From IMG/VR virus record IMGVR_UViG_3300034072_000758, positions 452,806 to 516,805 of that record: DNA of 64,000 bases; one strand, written 5' to 3'. The notes under the pieces are model-generated. The model was not told the origin of the DNA. It saw only the letters and a program-made list of their open reading frames with translations, and did no database searches. Below, in pieces: positions 1-28,052 of this stretch (position 1 is its first letter; each line of letters starts with the position of its first letter). The translations under genes were made by a program, and so were the position numbers.

Positions 1-2958
1 GGTGATTTGAATTTCATCCCCCGCCGACAACACGGCGGTCATCACAACCGATGATCCCGTTACCGTATATTCATCCGGGTTCAGGCGCAGACCGTTGACA
101 TCCACGAACAATGTCTCCGGTGCTTGACTATTGTTTCCAATCACATATGTCGAGTTCGCATGGTAATTAAACACTTCGATCTGAACATTCGCCCCAGCGG
201 TCAATTCGCTGAAAGTTCTCAGCGTGATTGTGTCGGCTGGTGTATTTGAAATAACGACCGTTTTGTTCCCGTGATCGACTGAATACAGGCTTGGTGAAAT
301 ACGCTTACCATCAGCAAATGGAACAACGACATCCGCATTTTCAGTATAAGATACGAGGTGAACCGTTCCGTTGCTTAAGATGTCGTGATAGCCTTGTACT
401 GGCATAGAAGCGCCGCCAGACATGAATACGTCAATACTCAAGGTATCGCTCACCGAAGGAGCAACCAACTCTTCTGGGTTATTGCGCTCCATCTGAAAGC
501 CATCTTGTTCGTTGATAGTATCGTCGCCATCCTGATCGAGAATTGTAAAATCCTTTTCATCCGTGAATGATCCACCATCAATGCGATCATCCTTGATGCC
601 AGTCAGCTTTTCGATGTTTGTTTCCTCAAACCCGCCGTAGAAACGAACAACACGATCCGCCGCAGCATTCGCCGCGATATTTTCTTTGACGTAAACCGTA
701 ATGACCGTGTTCGCGTCATAAGAACCATTAAACAGAATTGTATTGCTCGTTATTGTGTAGTTCTTAACGACTTCGTTGTCAGCGAGCACTTCAACGATCT
801 TATTTGTTACGTCATAGTTGAGAGGAATGGATTGATTGTAAATGAAGCTCTCCTGAAAAACGACAGGAAGGTGGTCAATTCTATCAAAATTCAAACCAAT
901 TTTGATAAAGCGCGTTGGGTTCCAAGATGCGGGAGTATATTCCGCAAGATCGCGGCCAGTTTTATTGTAATTAGCGTACCAAGTTTTCCAAGGTTCGGTT
1001 GTCTGAATGATTGTGAGATCACGAGCATTCTTCATATCCAACATGCGATATGAGTTCGTGGACTCGTCAAAATATGCTGGGAAATCGAAATCCATAACCG
1101 ACACCGCAGCGTTGTCGATGTCTGGCGAAACGATACGCGAGAACTCACGAACCTTAACACGATATGGCTTCACTTCGGTGATGTAATCAATGAGGTTTTG
1201 TGTGTTGTCGATAGGCTGAACTGGTACAGCCTTAAGTGGTTCGTTATATCCAATCAAATTTAGGAACGAGGTCTTGAAAGCCCAAGTGACCTGATCTTGG
1301 CTCGAATGAATATAGTGAAGCATATCGTAGAACATTGTGTTTTGTTCTTCGATAGTCAAAATTTCACTTCTCAGCGTATCAATCAAATACTTCAATTCAA
1401 TCGAACCATCACGTTGGTTGAATTGATCAACGTCACCTTCAAACTTGATCAGGTCTTCGTCGTAGAATTTTTCAGAAAGCTCGATTGTACCGGATTGTCT
1501 CGCCACAACGATCCACGCGCCGTCGATGTGTTCACACCATAGCCATTTGCCGTTATCGTCATCCAATACCTTGACGAATTTGTCTTTGTTATTTACGAAA
1601 GAAACGTCGCGGTCTCTAATCGTATTATAAGTAACAGCAGGGGGATTCAAATATGAGTAACCCTCAGCGTACCAATCTACATAATTGAAGAAATCAACAG
1701 TTCTGTAATTCTGATAATTGATCAGTTCGTATGCTGTAGAATTGTATTCCCATACTGTCCAGAAATTGTGAGTTTCGCTGTTTGCGTTCACTAGAACCTT
1801 GTAGCCTTGAGTTGGGTTCGGGATAGCATCGCGTTCTTCCAGCGTATCGACCACAATGTCGTAGGTCTTCACCGGAGAGAATACCAGACCCGGATTATTG
1901 ACCAAGAAGGAGCTTCCATATCCAGTCAAGGTTACGTTAGCAAAATAGGAGGCGGCTTGGCTATACGCACAATATCCGAAGCGAGAAGGACCATAGAACG
2001 GTGAGTTCGATGGAATCTCGTATTCAAGCGCAGTATTATCGTCCAGAGAGCCATTTTTTTGCGACGTTCGAATCGTGACACGATTACTGGCACGGACCAC
2101 TTCGATTTGTATTTCGCCCAGAGCGTTCCATCCACCGCCTTCTGGCAAAATAGTATTATGGCCATTCACGAGAATGGTCTTGGTTGTCCCGGCGTAATAC
2201 ACAAGGCTCCATGCCTCAGATACATTGCTCCCTTTGACCGCACGATTTGCGATCAAGCTATGAGGGACGCCATTGACTTCGGCAAAAGCTACCACAAGAC
2301 CAATAACGTCATCATCCCCGTTGGTGCTACCTACGGTAACGGTATGCTTGTAGTTCGACAAAGCATTCGGTGAAACGAAACCAATCATGTTGGCGCTGTT
2401 CACAGTGGTTTCGAAACGGTTATTGACGAAATCCCAAGAAAGCGCTTCGTTTCCCGGTGGAATCACACCAGCATTAATGAAATATTGATTTCCGTTAAAT
2501 CTCCCCCAAGTATTGAAGATTTCGGATTGTGTAGGCGTCTGAACAACGTCTTCGTCATTGGCATCTTCTGGGATGTTTTCGGTCGATGCTTCCCACACAC
2601 TCCACTGAGGATCATCGACATTGCTAACGCCGTCCACAAGAATTTTATATTTGTTTCCCGCGATTATGGAAGAAACAAAATTTGGATCGAGCAACAGATC
2701 ATTGCGCTCCTGATAACTGTAGACCTTGTGATCATAAGTCGTTTCTGGTGGAAGTTGTTCAATATATTTTTTACCTTCGGCGCGTCTCCACACGAGATAT
2801 TCCGAATAGGGAGTCGTGGCTACCAAGCTATCAATGTACGAAGACCTTTCGATAACGAAAGCTTCTTTCGCAAATATGTTATTAGCTATTTTAACAAAGG
2901 CTTTTCTTGCGACGGTGAAGTCTGTGATAGAAAATATGCCACGATTCAATTCATTCAT
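1..2958 (-). CDS. Large virion structural protein, probable baseplate wedge subunit (partial; runs off window start)
   Basis: ATG at 2958 (MNELNRGIFS...) read in frame to position 1 (...AVLSAGDEIQIT); absent from ORF track because there is no stop in the window; contains WAFKTSFL...IDYITEVKPYRVKVREF, recalled from Rak2-like giant baseplate proteins; TAAATA box 5 nt upstream. Confidence 0.6.
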   Translation of the reverse strand, partial: MNELNRGIFSITDFTVARKAFVKIANNIFAKEAFVIERSSYIDSLVATTPYSEYLVWRRAEGKKYIEQLPPETTYDHKVYSYQERNDLLLDPNFVSSIIAGNKYKILVDGVSNVDDPQWSVWEASTENIPEDANDEDVVQTPTQSEIFNTWGRFNGNQYFINAGVIPPGNEALSWDFVNNRFETTVNSANMIGFVSPNALSNYKHTVTVGSTNGDDDVIGLVVAFAEVNGVPHSLIANRAVKGSNVSEAWSLVYYAGTTKTILVNGHNTILPEGGGWNALGEIQIEVVRASNRVTIRTSQKNGSLDDNTALEYEIPSNSPFYGPSRFGYCAYSQAASYFANVTLTGYGSSFLVNNPGLVFSPVKTYDIVVDTLEERDAIPNPTQGYKVLVNANSETHNFWTVWEYNSTAYELINYQNYRTVDFFNYVDWYAEGYSYLNPPAVTYNTIRDRDVSFVNNKDKFVKVLDDDNGKWLWCEHIDGAWIVVARQSGTIELSEKFYDEDLIKFEGDVDQFNQRDGSIELKYLIDTLRSEILTIEEQNTMFYDMLHYIHSSQDQVTWAFKTSFLNLIGYNEPLKAVPVQPIDNTQNLIDYITEVKPYRVKVREFSRIVSPDIDNAAVSVMDFDFPAYFDESTNSYRMLDMKNARDLTIIQTTEPWKTWYANYNKTGRDLAEYTPASWNPTRFIKIGLNFDRIDHLPVVFQESFIYNQSIPLNYDVTNKIVEVLADNEVVKNYTITSNTILFNGSYDANTVITVYVKENIAANAAADRVVRFYGGFEETNIEKLTGIKDDRIDGGSFTDEKDFTILDQDGDDTINEQDGFQMERNNPEELVAPSVSDTLSIDVFMSGGASMPVQGYHDILSNGTVHLVSYTENADVVVPFADGKRISPSLYSVDHGNKTVVISNTPADTITLRTFSELTAGANVQIEVFNYHANSTYVIGNNSQAPETLFVDVNGLRLNPDEYTVTGSSVVMTAVLSAGDEIQIT

Positions 2959-23568: not shown

Positions 23569-23899
23569 ATATGTATAGCAACACGTCCATTAAAAGATTA
23601 TCTATACATTCCACCGAGGGCTTGTCCGTGTGCGGGAAATTAGTGTACATCAAACGATTATCATTGAACGTAAATTCATACTTATATTCTTGAATACCAT
23701 TATTTCTAAGCTTATACGTGATGTCATCAATAAAAATCTCCCAAATAAAAACCGAATCAATTTTGTCTATTTCAATACGTTTATACTTATGTCCATAGCC
23801 CTCACGACATTGCGTCCATTTACCCAAGCTCTCTATTTGCTTAAAAGCATTTTCAAGAGACCTGAGTAAATGTCGTTGTTCCTGCGGTGTGTAAATCAT
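23567..23899 (-). CDS. Hypothetical protein (AT-rich)
   Basis: Start re-assigned to the ATG overlapping the K+ channel stop. Confidence 0.6.
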   Translation of the reverse strand: MIYTPQEQRHLLRSLENAFKQIESLGKWTQCREGYGHKYKRIEIDKIDSVFIWEIFIDDITYKLRNNGIQEYKYEFTFNDNRLMYTNFPHTDKPSVECIDNLLMDVLLYI

Positions 23900-24240
23900 T
23901 TCTTTTGAGACCGAATGTATTTCAGAATTTCTTCTTGTTCTTCGTGCGTGAACTCGTTGCGATTCTCGACCATCGTACTGATGATGCGACCGATCAACAA
24001 AGGCATAATGAAAAGAAGAATGACGTGCATCAAGCCAGTCGCAATAAGCCGCCCAGCCAAAGTTGTGGGATACATGTCGCCGTAGCCGACCGTAGAGGCA
24101 GTCACGACGCACCACCAAAGACTATCCCAGAAAGTCTTTCCTTCGGCCCACGAGTAGCCCAGAGCCGCCAGAAACACGATCAATACATACAGAGCAATAA
24201 GCTCACGGATCGTGTTTGTCGCCTTGATCAAATACTTCAT
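23896..24240 (-). CDS. Two-TM potassium channel (KcsA-like)
   Basis: TM-pore-TM with TVGYGDMYP selectivity filter; AAGGAG RBS. Confidence 0.9.
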   Translation of the reverse strand: MKYLIKATNTIRELIALYVLIVFLAALGYSWAEGKTFWDSLWWCVVTASTVGYGDMYPTTLAGRLIATGLMHVILLFIMPLLIGRIISTMVENRNEFTHEEQEEILKYIRSQKK

Positions 24241-24299
24241 ACTATCTCCTTTTCTAATAGAGAAGCGCAGCATACTACTTTTTAATGGAAGCATCAAGA

Positions 24300-24581
24300 T
24301 CAGCCATGACGATATAATGCGTCAGACAACCAACCATCCCAATCATCGAATGGAGGAATGTTGTTGAGATCGACCACGAAGTAACGCATCAGGGCATTAT
24401 CGACTGTGGCTTGCGCTCTGGCCTTCCAAACAGCTTTCGCTTCCTCGGAAGATGGATAGATACCTACCAAGTCGATTTTAGAAACATCTTTGAATTGGAG
24501 AGAATCGACGGAGACCAACTCTCCCCCAATCACCAAATACAACCACTGTCTTGTGTGAAAGCTGTCGGTTTCGTTGGTCAT
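24300..24581 (-). CDS. DUF4170-like protein
   Basis: LYLVIGGEL...FKD...DLVGIYP...AVWKARAQATVDNALMRYFV, a family I recall as alphaproteobacterial. Confidence 0.75.
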   Translation of the reverse strand: MTNETDSFHTRQWLYLVIGGELVSVDSLQFKDVSKIDLVGIYPSSEEAKAVWKARAQATVDNALMRYFVVDLNNIPPFDDWDGWLSDALYRHG

Positions 24582-24608
24582 ATTCCAGTCCTTGTGATCA
24601 AAGTATTT

Positions 24609-24685
24609 TGGCAGGGGTGGAGAGATTCGAACTCCCATCGCGCAGTTTTGGAGACTGCCGCTCTAACCGTTGGAGCTACACCCCT
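24609..24685 (-). tRNA. tRNA-Trp(CCA)
   Basis: Canonical cloverleaf, GCAGT-CT-CCA-AA-ACTGC, encoded CCA. Confidence 0.95.
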
Positions 24686-24697
24686 ATAGGCGATCAA

Positions 24698-24976
24698 TCA
24701 CTTGACCGCAAAGGAAGAAATGAGCTTACAACTCGTTTTTACAAACCCTACATAACGAGGGTCCGAGAAACGGTCGAAGTCATTCAAATAATCGAAGTCC
24801 GCCTTGTCGATTTCATACACATGATATTCGACGGCTGGTGAATGCTGTTCTACAACCGTAAAACTACGGTCGCTTCTCAAGCCACGTTCTTTATCTGCGA
24901 TCTTCACAGCTTCAATCGGCCTTAAGTTATTCGTCAAGGCGACGATATGATTTTGATTCAAAACAGCGGTACGCAT
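24698..24976 (-). CDS. Hypothetical protein
   Basis: AAGGAG RBS; TTGACT promoter-like element near 25023. Confidence 0.7.
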   Translation of the reverse strand: MRTAVLNQNHIVALTNNLRPIEAVKIADKERGLRSDRSFTVVEQHSPAVEYHVYEIDKADFDYLNDFDRFSDPRYVGFVKTSCKLISSFAVK

Positions 24977-25036
24977 ACTATTACTCCTTACCCGACATTA
25001 ATAATTTATTTACATTATCAAAGTCAATTTTATTTT

Positions 25037-25127
25037 TGGAGGACGTGGTGGGACTCGAACCCACGGTGGTCTATGTTACGACAACAGGTTAAGAGCCTGT
25101 CCCTCTCGCCGCTGAGGTGACACGTCC
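25037..25127 (-). tRNA. tRNA-Lys(CUU), long-variable-arm variant
   Basis: ACAGG-CT-CTT-AA-CCTGT; extra arm GTC-GTAACATA-GAC; U73, encoded CCA. Confidence 0.85.
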
Positions 25128-25140
25128 GTATCAAAAATGT

Positions 25141-25220
25141 AGGGAGATCGGGTTCACCACAATCATGCTGGTACACAAGGTCGTCACATGATTAGTAACC
25201 CACTAGGGCATGGCTCCAGC
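25141..25220 (-). ncRNA. Small rod-like structured RNA inside the tRNA array
   Basis: GGAG/CTCC, GGGTT/AACCC and TAATCATG/CATGATTG nested helices. Confidence 0.4.
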
Positions 25221-25221
25221 T

Positions 25222-25297
25222 TGGTGAACACGGTGGGGGTCGAACCCACGACCTACTGATTAAAAGTCAGTTGCTCTACCTACTGAGCTACGTGTTC
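25222..25297 (-). tRNA. tRNA-Lys(UUU)
   Basis: Canonical, ACTGA-CT-TTT-AA-TCAGT, encoded CCA. Confidence 0.95.
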
Positions 25298-25298
25298 G

Positions 25299-25378
25299 TG
25301 CGCCCTGTCGGACTCGAACCGACACTCGTTAGAAGCAGATTTTAAGTCTGCCGGGTCTACCAATTTCCCCAAGGGCGC
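25299..25378 (-). tRNA. tRNA-Leu(UAA)
   Basis: GCAGA-CT-TAA-AA-TCTGC; no CCA, 1-nt spacer to next tRNA. Confidence 0.92.
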
Positions 25379-25428
25379 TTAGGTACTTTTCTTGTAAACA
25401 TCAAAGATGATTTTGGCAACATCTTTGT

Positions 25429-25504
25429 TGGCGAGGATAGAAGGATTCGAACCTCCGACACATGCGTTCGAAGCGCATTGCTCTGTCCACTGAGCTATAT
25501 CCCC
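25429..25504 (-). tRNA. tRNA-Arg(UCG)
   Basis: ATGCG-CT-TCG-AA-CGCAT, encoded CCA. Confidence 0.93.
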
Positions 25505-25505
25505 G

Positions 25506-25590
25506 TGCGCCGAGAGGGATTCGAACCCTCATACCATTACGGTGTCCGTTTTTGAAACGGGTGCGTCTACCAAAGTTCCGCCACCAGCGC
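25506..25590 (-). tRNA. tRNA-Leu(CAA)
   Basis: CCGT-TT-CAA-AA-ACGG, type II arm; no CCA, 1-nt spacer. Confidence 0.9.
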
Positions 25591-25641
25591 ATAGAAAACC
25601 TTTAATATAGATCGTTATCCACATCCATATTAAAGGTTATG

Positions 25642-25725
25642 AGGATGTAGAGGGACTCGAACCCCCGATGGTCTTTTGACAACGGATTAAAAGCCCGTCC
25701 CTCTCGCCGCTGAGGTGATACATCC
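25642..25725 (-). tRNA. tRNA-Lys(UUU), long-variable-arm variant
   Basis: ACGGG-CT-TTT-AA-TCCGT; extra arm GTC-AAAA-GAC; D region identical to 25037-25127. Confidence 0.85.
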
Positions 25726-25740
25726 ATAGTAGTATTTGTT

Positions 25741-25817
25741 TGGAGGACGTGGTGGGACTCGAACCCACAACATTCGGTTTAAGAGACCGACGCTCTAACC
25801 ATTGTAGCTACACGTCC
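25741..25817 (-). tRNA. tRNA-Lys(CUU)
   Basis: TCGGT-CT-CTT-AA-ACCGA, U73, encoded CCA. Confidence 0.93.
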
Positions 25818-25834
25818 GTATCAAACAAATACTG

Positions 25835-25907
25835 CGCGGATCAAGGGACTCGAACCCATAACCCTCTGTTTAGAAGACAGATGCTCGTCCAATTGAGCTT
25901 CATCCGC
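25835..25907 (-). tRNA. tRNA-Arg(UCU)
   Basis: TCTGT-CT-TCT-AA-ACAGA; G7.G66 and T-stem mismatches; no CCA. Confidence 0.85.
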
Positions 25908-25916
25908 ATAGTAGTG

Positions 25917-26002
25917 TGTGCCGAGGGGGACTCGAACCCCCACGCCCATTACAGGCCCCGGTTTCTGAAACCGGGAAGTCTACCAAATTTCATCATCAGC
26001 AC
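25917..26002 (-). tRNA. tRNA-Leu(CAG)
   Basis: CCGGT-TT-CAG-AA-ACCGG, type II arm; no CCA. Confidence 0.9.
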
Positions 26003-26027
26003 GTATGCTCTTTCGAGCAAAGTCTTG

Positions 26028-26107
26028 TACGGGTGAGAGGACTCGAACCTCCACGATTGCTCGCTAGAACCTAAACCTAGTGCGTCTACCAGTTTCGCCA
26101 CACCCGC
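26028..26107 (-). tRNA. tRNA-Leu(UAG)
   Basis: CTAGG-TT-TAG-GT-TCTAG; no CCA. Confidence 0.92.
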
Positions 26108-26108
26108 G

Positions 26109-26181
26109 CACTGCCAGTAGGACTCGAACCTACAACCTTCTGATTCGTAATCAGATGCTCATCCAGTTGAGCTATGGCAGC
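26109..26181 (-). tRNA. tRNA-Arg(ACG)
   Basis: TCTGA-TT-ACG-AA-TCAGA; no CCA, 1-nt spacer. Confidence 0.92.
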
Positions 26182-26189
26182 ATAAAGCA

Positions 26190-26295
26190 ACAAGACGGTG
26201 GGGTTCGAACCCACAACCTTTCGGCTCCGACTTTGACCGCAACGGCTTTTCGCAAACCATTACGTGCGTGTGTATACCCATTCCACCACGCCAAG
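26190..26295 (-). tRNA. Oversized Leu-like tRNA with a hairpin inserted in the anticodon arm
   Basis: Leu-type D arm, variable arm AGCC-GAAA-GGTT and intact T arm; 11-bp hairpin insert; two U.U pairs in acceptor. Confidence 0.6.
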
Positions 26296-26305
26296 TTACT
26301 TCAAG

Positions 26306-26390
26306 TGTCCATGAAAGGATTCGAACCTTCACGCCCATTACAGGCAACAGCCTCTCAAGCTGCCGTGGCTACCAATTACACCACACGGAC
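26306..26390 (-). tRNA. tRNA-Leu(GAG)
   Basis: GCAGC-TT-GAG-AG-GCTGT, type II arm; no CCA. Confidence 0.92.
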
Positions 26391-26399
26391 ATACGCAAG

Positions 26400-26516
26400 T
26401 GCGTTCGGGAGGATTCGAACCTCCAACCTCTATACTCGTTTGATCGTCATCCGACCAGTATAGCGGTATCCAACCCTCTAATGGGCTGGCGTGGCTACCA
26501 ATTTCACCACGAGCGC
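26400..26516 (-). tRNA. Oversized (117 nt) Leu-like tRNA with extended anticodon stem and ~45-nt variable arm
   Basis: GCGCTCG/CGAACGC-A acceptor, Leu-type D arm, CCAGCCC-ATTAGA-GGGTTGG, perfect T arm. Confidence 0.65.
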
Positions 26517-26526
26517 ATATTACGAG

Positions 26527-26601
26527 CGGGACTGGCAGGATTCGAACCTGCGACCTTCGGTTTCGTAGACCGGCGCTCTTATTCCGCTGAGCTACAGTCC
26601 C
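26527..26601 (-). tRNA. tRNA-Arg(ACG), second copy, first gene of the array
   Basis: CGGT-CT-ACG-AA-ACCG; no CCA. Confidence 0.92.
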
Positions 26602-26620
26602 GTAATACTTTGATTCACAA

Positions 26621-26632
26621 TGTAAAAGAACA
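26621..26632 (-). promoter_or_regulatory. boxA-like antitermination element
   Basis: TGTTCTTTTACA, 10/12 match to rrn boxA TGCTCTTTAACA, between attenuator and first tRNA. Confidence 0.6.
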
Positions 26633-26633
26633 T

Positions 26634-26669
26634 AGAAAAACCCCCAAAAGCGTATTGCTCTTGGGGGTT
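26634..26669 (-). terminator. Attenuator terminator of the tRNA operon
   Basis: AACCCCCAAGAGC-AATAC-GCTTTTGGGGGTT followed by TTTCT. Confidence 0.88.
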
Positions 26670-26742
26670 CGATCTTAACCGTTATGTTGTCTGCCTATTT
26701 CATCCGATGAAACGCAGACATGCGCGATTAAACCGTACCCCC
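26663..26742 (-). promoter_or_regulatory. Antiterminator helix (mutually exclusive with the terminator)
   Basis: GGGGGT-A-CGGT-TTAATCG (26742-26725) pairs with CGGTTAA-G-ATCG-A-ACCCCC (26681-26663), enclosing TGTCTGC/GCAGACA and TTTCAT/ATGAAA helices. Confidence 0.8.
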
Positions 26743-26793
26743 TTTCGGGCGGCGGAGCCACTTTCTTAACAGTTTAAGGCGCAGAGCGAACAT
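26728..26793 (-). CDS. Attenuator leader peptide MFALRLKLLRKWLRRPKGGTV
   Basis: AGGA RBS at 26807-26804; codons 4-15 are all Leu/Arg/Lys/Trp; 3' end overlaps the antiterminator 5' strand. Confidence 0.82.
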   Translation of the reverse strand: MFALRLKLLRKWLRRPKGGTV

Positions 26794-26839
26794 AACGAAA
26801 AATTCCTGTGATTTTGGGGCGAAACCCCGTGTGGATTTC

Positions 26840-26869
26840 ACCCTATCATTTCTATTTATCATCGGTCAA
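26840..26869 (-). promoter_or_regulatory. Promoter of leader/tRNA operon (sigma70-like with embedded TAAATA)
   Basis: TTGACC-N18-TAGGGT with extended -10 TG; TAAATA inside the spacer. Confidence 0.65.
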
Positions 26870-26904
26870 CAAAAAAAGTTATTTTCCGATGAATTTTTTT
26901 GAAC

Positions 26905-26939
26905 AAAGAAAAAGCGCCGCACGTTTCCATGCGGCGCTT
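26905..26939 (-). terminator. Intrinsic terminator insulating the tRNA operon from upstream transcription
   Basis: AAGCGCCGCATG-GAAA-CGTGCGGCGCTT + TTTCTTT. Confidence 0.88.
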
Positions 26940-26944
26940 CATCA

Positions 26945-27520
26945 TTACTTTACGATCTTGAAACCGTGCTTCTTGTAGTATGGAACGTTCTCGAAATCGA
27001 TGACCGACACCATAAACTTACCATAGCCGTTGCTGACCATGACTTGTTCGACCGTGGCCACGACCTGATCCACGACCGACTTGACCGCCTTCGCCGCTTT
27101 GATCTTCGGCTTGATGGTTTCGACAGCGGGTTCAACCGACGCTTCATCTTCAATAACGCGCGGCGCGATTTCGGCTGCGACCGTTTCGATGCGAGTGTCG
27201 ATGACATTGATGGAATCGCCGAACTTGGAGACTTCACGATCCAGACGCTTGAGTTCGAGGTTTTCGACCGCGTTGTTATGACCGTTACCATCCTTATGAA
27301 CGACTTCATCATTCTTCGTCGCGCCGAGGAAGCAGATGGCTATCAGACGATGGAGGCCGACCTTGGAATGGAGGGCGACGTTCTTGAGACTGATACGGAG
27401 CTTATCGCCATCCTTCTGATAGGATAGTTCGGTGCCGTCCTTCTTGAAGACGCGACCATCGGAAGTGGCAAGATATTGTTCGTCCGCGAAATAGAAACGG
27501 ACGCGCTTGACGCTCGACAT
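26945..27520 (-). CDS. HNH (HNH_3-like) domain protein with extended C-terminus
   Basis: SDGRV...LHRLIAICFL...VVHKDGNGHNNAVENLE; AAGGAG RBS. Confidence 0.8.
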   Translation of the reverse strand: MSSVKRVRFYFADEQYLATSDGRVFKKDGTELSYQKDGDKLRISLKNVALHSKVGLHRLIAICFLGATKNDEVVHKDGNGHNNAVENLELKRLDREVSKFGDSINVIDTRIETVAAEIAPRVIEDEASVEPAVETIKPKIKAAKAVKSVVDQVVATVEQVMVSNGYGKFMVSVIDFENVPYYKKHGFKIVK

Positions 27521-27599
27521 ATAAATCTCCTTAATTGATGTTGTTGGGGAGACAATATATCAGGTGTTTCAATTCGTCAACACCCCACGGCCAAAAATA

Positions 27600-28052
27600 T
27601 TATGACGGCATAGTCCCGTCCATATTTCCATCCGGCCAACCACTATAGATGTCTATAGCATCCAAGTCTTCTAAGGTTTCACAAGCGTCAATTTGTGCTT
27701 TTAACGCCCACGAATATGTATAGACCTGATTAACATATAACAGTAAATATCCAGAAAATGTGATCAAACCTTGAGCATTCATAGGAACGTTATTATTATT
27801 ATTATCGCGCCATGTATAGTTCGGTGGCAAAGGAATACCAGCCGTGACAGCAGCAACCATACCGGTAAGGTTTGTTCTCGCGCGGGCATCGGTAGCCCAA
27901 AAATATCCAAGATACCACATACCCGCAGCAAGCCTAGTCTCTCGGTGAGTATTAATATCATTGTTCAGTTTTAAGATTGTAGCCCCAACTGTTCGGTTAT
28001 CCTCAACCGAGATCAGAACGCCATTATCGTATACTTCTAATTTATTCAACAT
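27600..28052 (-). CDS. DUF4376-like tail fibre assembly protein
   Basis: TDARARTNL...WRDNNN..VPM...LKAQIDAC..LEDLDAI. Confidence 0.75.
   Translation of the reverse strand: MLNKLEVYDNGVLISVEDNRTVGATILKLNNDINTHRETRLAAGMWYLGYFWATDARARTNLTGMVAAVTAGIPLPPNYTWRDNNNNNVPMNAQGLITFSGYLLLYVNQVYTYSWALKAQIDACETLEDLDAIDIYSGWPDGNMDGTMPS

Follow-up and report, generated by a model that had tools for sequence, protein, structure and literature searches.

We identify a 9-base-pair complementarity, extendable to 10 pairs, that in predicted folds hides the start codon of a short leader peptide upstream of a phage tRNA operon, and find that an equivalent pairing recurs with different letters in two related giant phages. 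The helix sits in a leader-peptide attenuator whose codons are read by the tRNAs encoded just downstream, a switch that we did not find described in the literature searched. The window analysed is a stretch of 64,000 nucleotides, positions 452,806 to 516,805 of IMG/VR record IMGVR_UViG_3300034072_000758, and forms the end of a 516,805-bp phage genome with terminal repeats (hereafter G000) that appears to come from a subsurface or soil metagenome. The two relatives, of 415 kb (G001) and 578 kb (G002), likewise carry four such operons each, and in every case the leader is rich in the amino acids of its own tRNA set. The mechanism, including the role of the helix in the termination decision, is inferred from sequence and folding models.

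A start-region helix in a leader-peptide attenuator

A first-pass annotation of the sequence had proposed that a third helix in the attenuator sequesters the leader start codon, and that the last two bases of its 3' strand overlap the antiterminator. Reading the minus strand confirmed the complementarity: CGTTATGTT, which contains the leader ATG, is the exact reverse complement of AACATAACG, and U26798.G26679 can add a tenth, G.U pair. The helix is present in the minimum free energy structure of the 216-nt leader, which folds far better than shuffled sequences (z-score −4.96), and its pair probability is 0.92–1.0 in the terminated transcript.

We assessed chance in three ways. A perfect 9-nt complement between the 28-nt start region and the 60-nt spacer from the stop codon to the terminator arose in 0.65% of 2000 dinucleotide shuffles (p=0.0065), and a wider search space, a 22-nt core against all 101 downstream nucleotides, gave p=0.018. 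It is also the only complement of 6 nt or more between the whole upstream leader and that spacer. A DNA operator made of the two 9-mers was considered and rejected, because the half-sites are 100 bp apart.

The surrounding elements occupy the places expected of a leader-peptide attenuator (Table 1), with a promoter-like site 76 nt and a Shine-Dalgarno-like AGGAA 9 nt upstream of the ATG. The promoter is inferred from conservation; a generic promoter scan did not call it, but all 12 leader units of the three phages share TTGAC, 16–18 nt, then [CG]ATA[AG][AG], and a 5' hairpin follows the inferred transcription start in most units. In the finished transcript region 1 pairs with region 2 (26736-26721) and the terminator forms, whereas in the transcript cut before the terminator 3' arm region 2 (26742-26725) pairs with 26681-26663 to form an antiterminator of 17 pairs in three blocks: AAUCG/CGGUU (26729-26725 with 26681-26677), CGGUUU/AGAUCG (26735-26730 with 26675-26670) and GGGGGU/ACCCCC (26742-26737 with 26668-26663). 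Its 3' strand starts with CGG at 26681-26679, the last bases of the third helix, in agreement with the overlap noted in the first-pass annotation. The third helix encloses region 2 while the antiterminator 3' strand lies outside it, so the two are also topologically exclusive as nested structures. The G-run of the 5' hairpin can additionally pair with the C-run of the terminator 5' arm (26663-26669), as seen in one prefix fold, a possible fourth alternative pairing.

Table 1. Positions of the leader unit, its surroundings and related features in the three phages
Sequence	Position	Strand	Feature
Window	26945-27520	-	HNH-like gene upstream of the unit
Window	26911-26940	-	Intrinsic terminator of the HNH-like gene; marks the start of a separate transcription unit
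Window	26842-26869	-	Promoter-like site: TTGACC (26869-26864), 16-nt spacer, GATAGG (26847-26842)
Window	26816-26828	-	5' hairpin GGGGU/GCCCC, just after the inferred transcription start
Window	26803-26807	-	Shine-Dalgarno-like AGGAA
Window	26789-26798	-	5' strand of the third helix, (U)CGUUAUGUU; 9-nt complement at 26797-26789; holds the start codon
Window	26728-26793	-	Leader ORF MFALRLKLLRKWLRRPKGGTV, 21 codons; ATG 26793-26791, TAA 26730-26728; codons 4-15 CTG CGC CTT AAA CTG TTA AGA AAG TGG CTC CGC CGC
Window	26769-26783	-	Region 1 (codons 4-9); pairs with region 2 through UGCGC/GCGCA and UUAAACUGU/ACGGUUUAA
Window	26721-26742	-	Region 2, the end of the ORF with its stop codon and 7 nt beyond; pairs with region 1 or, as antiterminator 5' strand, with region 3
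Window	26688-26720	-	Stable hairpin between regions 2 and 3 (7 + 7 bp)
Window	26679-26688	-	3' strand of the third helix, AACAUAACG(G); 9-nt complement at 26688-26680; last 2-3 nt are the first of the antiterminator 3' strand
Window	26657-26681	-	Region 3, antiterminator 3' strand and terminator 5' arm
Window	26636-26670	-	Intrinsic terminator: 14-bp GC-rich stem (26670-26657 with 26651-26638, −20.9 kcal/mol for its core), T-run at 26640-26636
Window	24609-26601	-	tRNA operon: Arg(ACG) x2, Leu(GAG, TAG, CAG, CAA, TAA), Arg(TCT, TCG), Lys(CTT) x2, Lys(TTT) x2, Trp(CCA), plus a tRNA-like gene
Window	26400-26516	-	117-nt tRNA-like gene
Window	25037-25127	-	'tRNA-Lys' with long variable arm
Window	25641-25725	-	'tRNA-Lys' with long variable arm
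Window	23896-24638	-	K+-channel-like ORF (Ion_trans_2) and DUF4170 ORF
G000 genome	424095-424235		46-codon leader of the Phe/Ile/Met/Gln/Asn/Pro/Asp (then Thr/Val/Ala/Gly) array
G000 genome	353341-353279	-	Leader MTFMSYSHSCSYSHSSKGGF of the His/Tyr/Ser/Cys array
G000 genome (locus L002)	352555-353190	-	Short HisRS-like ORF (PF13393)
G000 genome	117291-117364	+	tRNA with anticodon CTA
G001 locus L049	4565-4559		CTCTGAA, positions −14 to −8 from the ATG, right after the SD
G001 locus L049	4433-4427		TTCAGAG, 9 nt before the terminator stem and 2 nt before the antiterminator 3' strand
G002 locus L103	4633-4627		CCAATGA, across the ATG
G002 locus L103	4506-4500		TCATTGG, 16 nt before the terminator stem
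G001 locus L050	about 815-990		Leader of the Glu/Asp/Gly operon
G002 locus L116	about 945-1100		Leader of the Glu/Asp/Gly operon
G002 locus L079	10286-10442	-	tRNA with anticodon CTA
G001 locus L051	1386-1473		tRNA with anticodon CTA

The leader codons match the tRNAs of the downstream operon

The first-pass annotation did not state, in this finding, that the controlled operon consists of tRNA genes matched to the leader codons, and this changes what the switch would sense. The terminator lies 35 nt before the first of 14 tRNA genes called by ARAGORN, which together with the 117-nt tRNA-like gene follow the leader, and the tRNA genes encode only Arg, Leu, Lys and Trp. Of the 20 leader residues 13 are Leu, Arg, Lys or Trp, including 12 in a row (residues 4–15), and by standard wobble rules the codons of these twelve are read by 8 of the 11 anticodon species of the operon. 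We considered whether the ORF is instead a cationic amphipathic peptide gene and rejected this reading, as the other leaders have quite different compositions, each matched to its own tRNAs.

To place the unit in context we examined the whole genome, which has 57 tRNA genes, most of them in four amino-acid-sorted operons with further genes single or scattered. Each operon has a paralogous unit upstream. The three tRNA-Glu genes follow the leader MFAIREEREER; the Phe/Ile/Met/Gln/Asn/Pro/Asp (then Thr/Val/Ala/Gly) array follows a leader in which 41 of the 45 residues after the initiator Met belong to that set; and the His/Tyr/Ser/Cys array, together with a HisRS-like gene, follows MTFMSYSHSCSYSHSSKGGF. 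The motif TTGAC...GATAAATAG occurs three times in 517 kb, each time at one of these units.

A neighbouring DUF4376 protein led us to G001, and the HisRS-like protein led to 24 IMG/VR contigs, many of 400–580 kb and among them G002. G001 (loci L049, L050, L052) and G002 (loci L079, L103, L116) have the same four sorted operons and leaders of matching composition. Across the three phages the roughly 50–70 tRNA genes per genome are mostly sorted into Arg/Leu/Lys/Trp (D-type), Phe/Ile/Met/Val/Gln/Asn/Pro/Thr/Ala (C-type), Glu/Asp/Gly, and Ser/Tyr/His/Cys (S-type) operons, each following a promoter and a leader ORF. In each of the three genomes the true assignment of leaders to clusters ranks first of the 24 permutations. 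All D-, C- and S-type units carry canonical terminators. The Glu/Asp/Gly units are less clear, and the leaders of these operons in G001 and G002 lack a canonical terminator and start 7–9 nt after the −10 box, so they would be leaderless or nearly so.

More distant relatives (G003, G004, G006, G011 and G014) have unsorted tRNA arrays, and a crude filter that recovers 8 of the 9 D-, C- and S-type units in G000–G002 found no such leaders in them. A BLAST search with tRNA-Trp across 24 related records was too insensitive, and tRNA genes were located with the tRNA covariance model instead. Sequence searches for further leaders returned little: blastn of the leader against 50,697 phage records matched only the tRNA part; degenerate DNA patterns for the promoter plus MFA start, and for region 3 plus terminator, gave only chance hits or ordinary terminators; and a pattern from the G001/G002 leader found only those two. 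No RNA-seq run was found to hold the phage, although an 856-nt contig in run X5, about 85% identical and covering 26516-26999, spans the leader.

An equivalent pairing recurs in both orthologous leaders

Absence of the pairing from homologs had been named beforehand as evidence against it, and we examined the two orthologues of the Arg/Leu/Lys/Trp leader present in the collections searched. In both, the longest complement between the whole upstream leader and the pre-terminator spacer again falls on the translation start region, and it is 7 bp in each, with sequences that differ from each other and from G000 (Table 1). Position-specific shuffle p-values are 0.0065, 0.007 and 0.04 for G000, G001 and G002 (Fisher combination 2e-4), and 0.018, 0.12 and 0.087 under the wider null (Fisher 9e-3), with the caveat that only three sequences exist and that the test windows were chosen after the data had been seen. 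With G000 and G002 aligned on the AUG, four of the seven shared pairs differ on both sides and the remaining three are the AUG itself. In G001, however, the helix covers the SD–AUG spacer rather than the AUG. RNAalifold on a MAFFT alignment of the three D-type leaders misaligned the terminators and did not recover the helix, a result that says nothing either way given the poor alignment.

The helix is not a feature of the paralogous leaders. C- and S-type leaders have no significant post-ORF partner (Fisher p 0.58 and 1.0, respectively, and 0.38 and 0.33 under the wider null), with only a weak, interrupted counterpart in the S-type leader of G000 (duplex p=0.038), and would work, if they work, without one.

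These data bear on whether the complementarity is merely fortuitous. The individual p-values under the widest null, the differing exact positions, the absence from paralogues, and the fact that 7-bp matches are common in 200-nt RNAs would be compatible with chance. Against this, all three leaders have their longest leader-to-spacer complement in the same 20-nt start region and the same pre-terminator spacer, the combined p is low, and the 9-bp helix dominates the ensemble in G000. We consider a fortuitous, functionless pairing unlikely, and rate the helix as real and probably functional.

Folding models suggest a clamp favouring termination

Folding the complete transcript at equilibrium always gave the terminator, whatever the ribosome position, in G000 and G002, and we therefore folded the transcript length by length. 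In G000 without a ribosome the helix has a probability of 0.92 once its 3' strand is made (3' end at 26679), and when ACCCCC has emerged (26663) helix 1:2 still holds (P 0.92, antiterminator P 0.04). Forcing the 5' strand of the helix single-stranded flips this at once to antiterminator P 0.98, which persists to 26644. With a ribosome stalled at L6, L9 or W12 the antiterminator has P 0.78–0.99, and with a ribosome at the stop codon it has P 0.00. In energetic terms the helix adds about −8 kcal/mol to the terminator-competent ensemble, in which region 3 is free, and the advantage of the antiterminated state falls from −10.4 to −3.6 kcal/mol. In these models 1:2 alone is therefore too weak against 2:3, and the third helix supplies the missing stability of the default-off state.

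The same test gave a moderate effect in G002 and none in G001, and in the full-length ensemble of G002 the helix is a minor species with a probability of about 0.1. In G000 one prefix length (26657-26650) favours the antiterminator even with the helix allowed. Pairing of the C-run proved a poor proxy for the antiterminator, because the C-run can also pair with the G-run of the 5' hairpin. All of these are equilibrium models, which ignore kinetics, polymerase pausing, ribosome queues and the RNA held inside the polymerase.

We propose that the helix is a functional part of a ribosome-mediated transcription attenuator controlling the Arg/Leu/Lys/Trp tRNA operon. In this model, a ribosome stalled on the Leu, Arg, Lys or Trp codons 4–15 would cover region 1, leaving region 2 to pair with region 3, so that the antiterminator forms and the tRNA genes are transcribed, whereas a ribosome that runs to the stop codon would cover region 2 and allow the terminator to form. 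The third helix would act as a clamp for the case in which no ribosome is on the start region. As soon as its 3' strand leaves the polymerase it would pair with the free start region, closing a domain that holds helix 1:2 and the spacer hairpin, and taking the first 2–3 nt of the antiterminator 3' strand. An untranslated leader would therefore default to termination with its start codon closed to late ribosomes, while a ribosome stalled on the first three or four regulatory codons would, by footprint reasoning, cover the 5' strand and disable the clamp. The net effect would be an operon turned on by slow decoding of its own codons and not by a general loss of translation. The complementarity, its position, its recurrence in orthologues, the match between leader and tRNAs, and the model energies were established directly in our analysis; all of the dynamics, including any rise of read-through when charged tRNA is scarce and any effect of the helix on initiation or termination in the cell, are inferences from them. 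We assign this specific clamp role a probability of about 0.5.

The first-pass interpretation, that the helix blocks re-initiation in an untranslated or terminated transcript, may favour termination as in super-attenuation, and makes the switch respond to codon-specific stalling and not to global translation shut-off, is supported only in part. The attenuator architecture, the predicted sequestration of the AUG, the recurrence in orthologues and the G000 folding models fit it, but these are equilibrium models, their effect is uneven in the orthologues, the paralogous leaders lack the helix, and a block to re-initiation remains an inference.

An alternative is that the helix only shuts off leader translation, closing the start site after the first ribosome has passed, or on released and read-through transcripts, and so keeping ribosomes off the leader and the pre-tRNA. 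The AUG is paired with P about 1 in the finished transcript, and most other leader units also have the start region predicted as paired, but with partners inside the ORF, which points to a general need to close the start site rather than to a conserved clamp geometry; the lack of any modelled effect on the antiterminator in G001 is also consistent with this view. However, the partner always lies just 5' of the antiterminator 3' strand (9–16 nt before the terminator stem) and overlaps it in G000, a placement that pure translational shut-off would not require, and the modelled effect on 1:2 versus 2:3 in G000 is large. We regard this alternative as unlikely, on a par with chance.

Least likely is a processing or stability element that defines a compact leader RNA domain for RNase cleavage away from the tRNA precursor, or a stable released small RNA with a function of its own. 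The helix does bring the 5' and 3' parts of the leader together next to a terminator hairpin, and released attenuator RNAs can act in trans in other bacteria (PMC6614838). However, 9–10 bp is short for RNase III, no target or conserved single-stranded seed was found, and leader sequences are not conserved between the phages.

Relation to known regulatory leaders

The unit shows every testable defining feature of a leader-peptide attenuator. Ribosome-mediated attenuators of amino-acid operons (trp, his, leu, thr, ilv, pheA) share with this unit a short leader ORF with regulatory codons, mutually exclusive 1:2, 2:3 and 3:4 helices and an intrinsic terminator, and terminate by default when the leader is not translated (super-attenuation; PMC7968998, PMC1183508), as is modelled here. 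The genes controlled here are tRNAs rather than enzymes, the leader would poll several amino acids and several isoacceptors at once, and in the model an extra helix to the start codon is needed for the default-off state because 2:3 is much stronger than 1:2. A covariance-model search of 24000-28000 against Rfam at E up to 1 found only tRNAs and chance-level hits, and nothing in 26630-26840, so no Rfam leader or riboswitch family (Trp, His, Leu and Thr leaders, T-box) matches the region.

The pheST attenuator of E. coli, in which the leader peptide pheM controls an aminoacyl-tRNA synthetase, is likewise leader-peptide attenuation of a translation-apparatus gene that senses the supply of charged tRNA, and the Ser/Tyr/His/Cys leader of this phage also precedes a HisRS-like gene. 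pheST encodes a synthetase only and senses a single amino acid, whereas here the products are the tRNAs themselves, which would give a direct feedback on tRNA supply. In the E. coli trp leader, a distal leader segment is reported (Yanofsky laboratory, early 1980s) to base-pair with the ribosome-binding site in the start region of the leader peptide and limit its translation; here the partner abuts and overlaps the antiterminator 3' strand, and the model therefore predicts that it also biases the termination decision. T-box leaders also couple tRNA status to a terminator/antiterminator choice in cis, but this leader has no specifier loop or T-box sequence, and sensing would go through a translating ribosome rather than direct tRNA binding. 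In the phage MS2 maturation gene a long-distance interaction closes a translation start in the equilibrated RNA, so that translation is possible only on the nascent chain (PMC4615214); there an upstream complementary sequence pairs with the SD and the output is translation only, whereas here the partner is downstream and linked to a transcription terminator.

Leader-peptide attenuation is a textbook mechanism for amino-acid biosynthesis operons and a synthetase operon, but searches of the open literature found no case in which it governs tRNA genes. A broader reading, which we consider slightly more likely than not, is that a small clade of giant phages sorts its tRNA genes into four operons by amino acid and governs each with a leader peptide decoded by that operon's own tRNAs. 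This would be a ribosome-based homeostat of tRNA supply, switching an operon on when host tRNAs for those codons run short, for example after host shut-off or anticodon-nuclease defence, and the start-codon helix would make the Arg/Leu/Lys/Trp unit fail-safe, so that it stays off when translation stops altogether. If real, the system shows how a virus with its own tRNA set doses those tRNAs according to decoding demand, and offers compact natural sensors that report the decoding speed of chosen codons. The third helix would address a design problem specific to this unit, an antiterminator stronger than helix 1:2.

Other unusual genes

Beside normal 76-nt tRNA-Lys genes, the operon contains 'tRNA-Lys' genes of 85–91 nt with long variable arms (anticodons CTT and TTT), although class II architecture is not usual for tRNA-Lys. 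The kind is conserved in G001 (L049) with a shared 20-nt D-arm string, and a search with this string found only G001 in IMG/VR and 22 chance hits in metagenome contigs. The 117-nt tRNA-like gene (Rfam tRNA, 34.8 bits) has a Leu-like acceptor and D arm and an insertion of about 45 nt, and is not called by ARAGORN; the contig about 85% identical in run X5 lacks exactly 26390-26515. The protein of a 92-aa ORF inside the cluster has no relatives in IMG/VR.

The short HisRS-like ORF is embedded in the Ser/Tyr/His/Cys tRNA operon (L002; also L052 and L079), downstream of its leader and a double terminator, and in G000 its 5' part reads in another frame across a G5 run. All three phages also carry tRNAs with anticodon CTA, labelled 'Pyl' by ARAGORN, that are possible amber suppressors. 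At the end of the Arg/Leu/Lys/Trp operon, the K+-channel-like and DUF4170 ORFs follow directly after tRNA-Trp.
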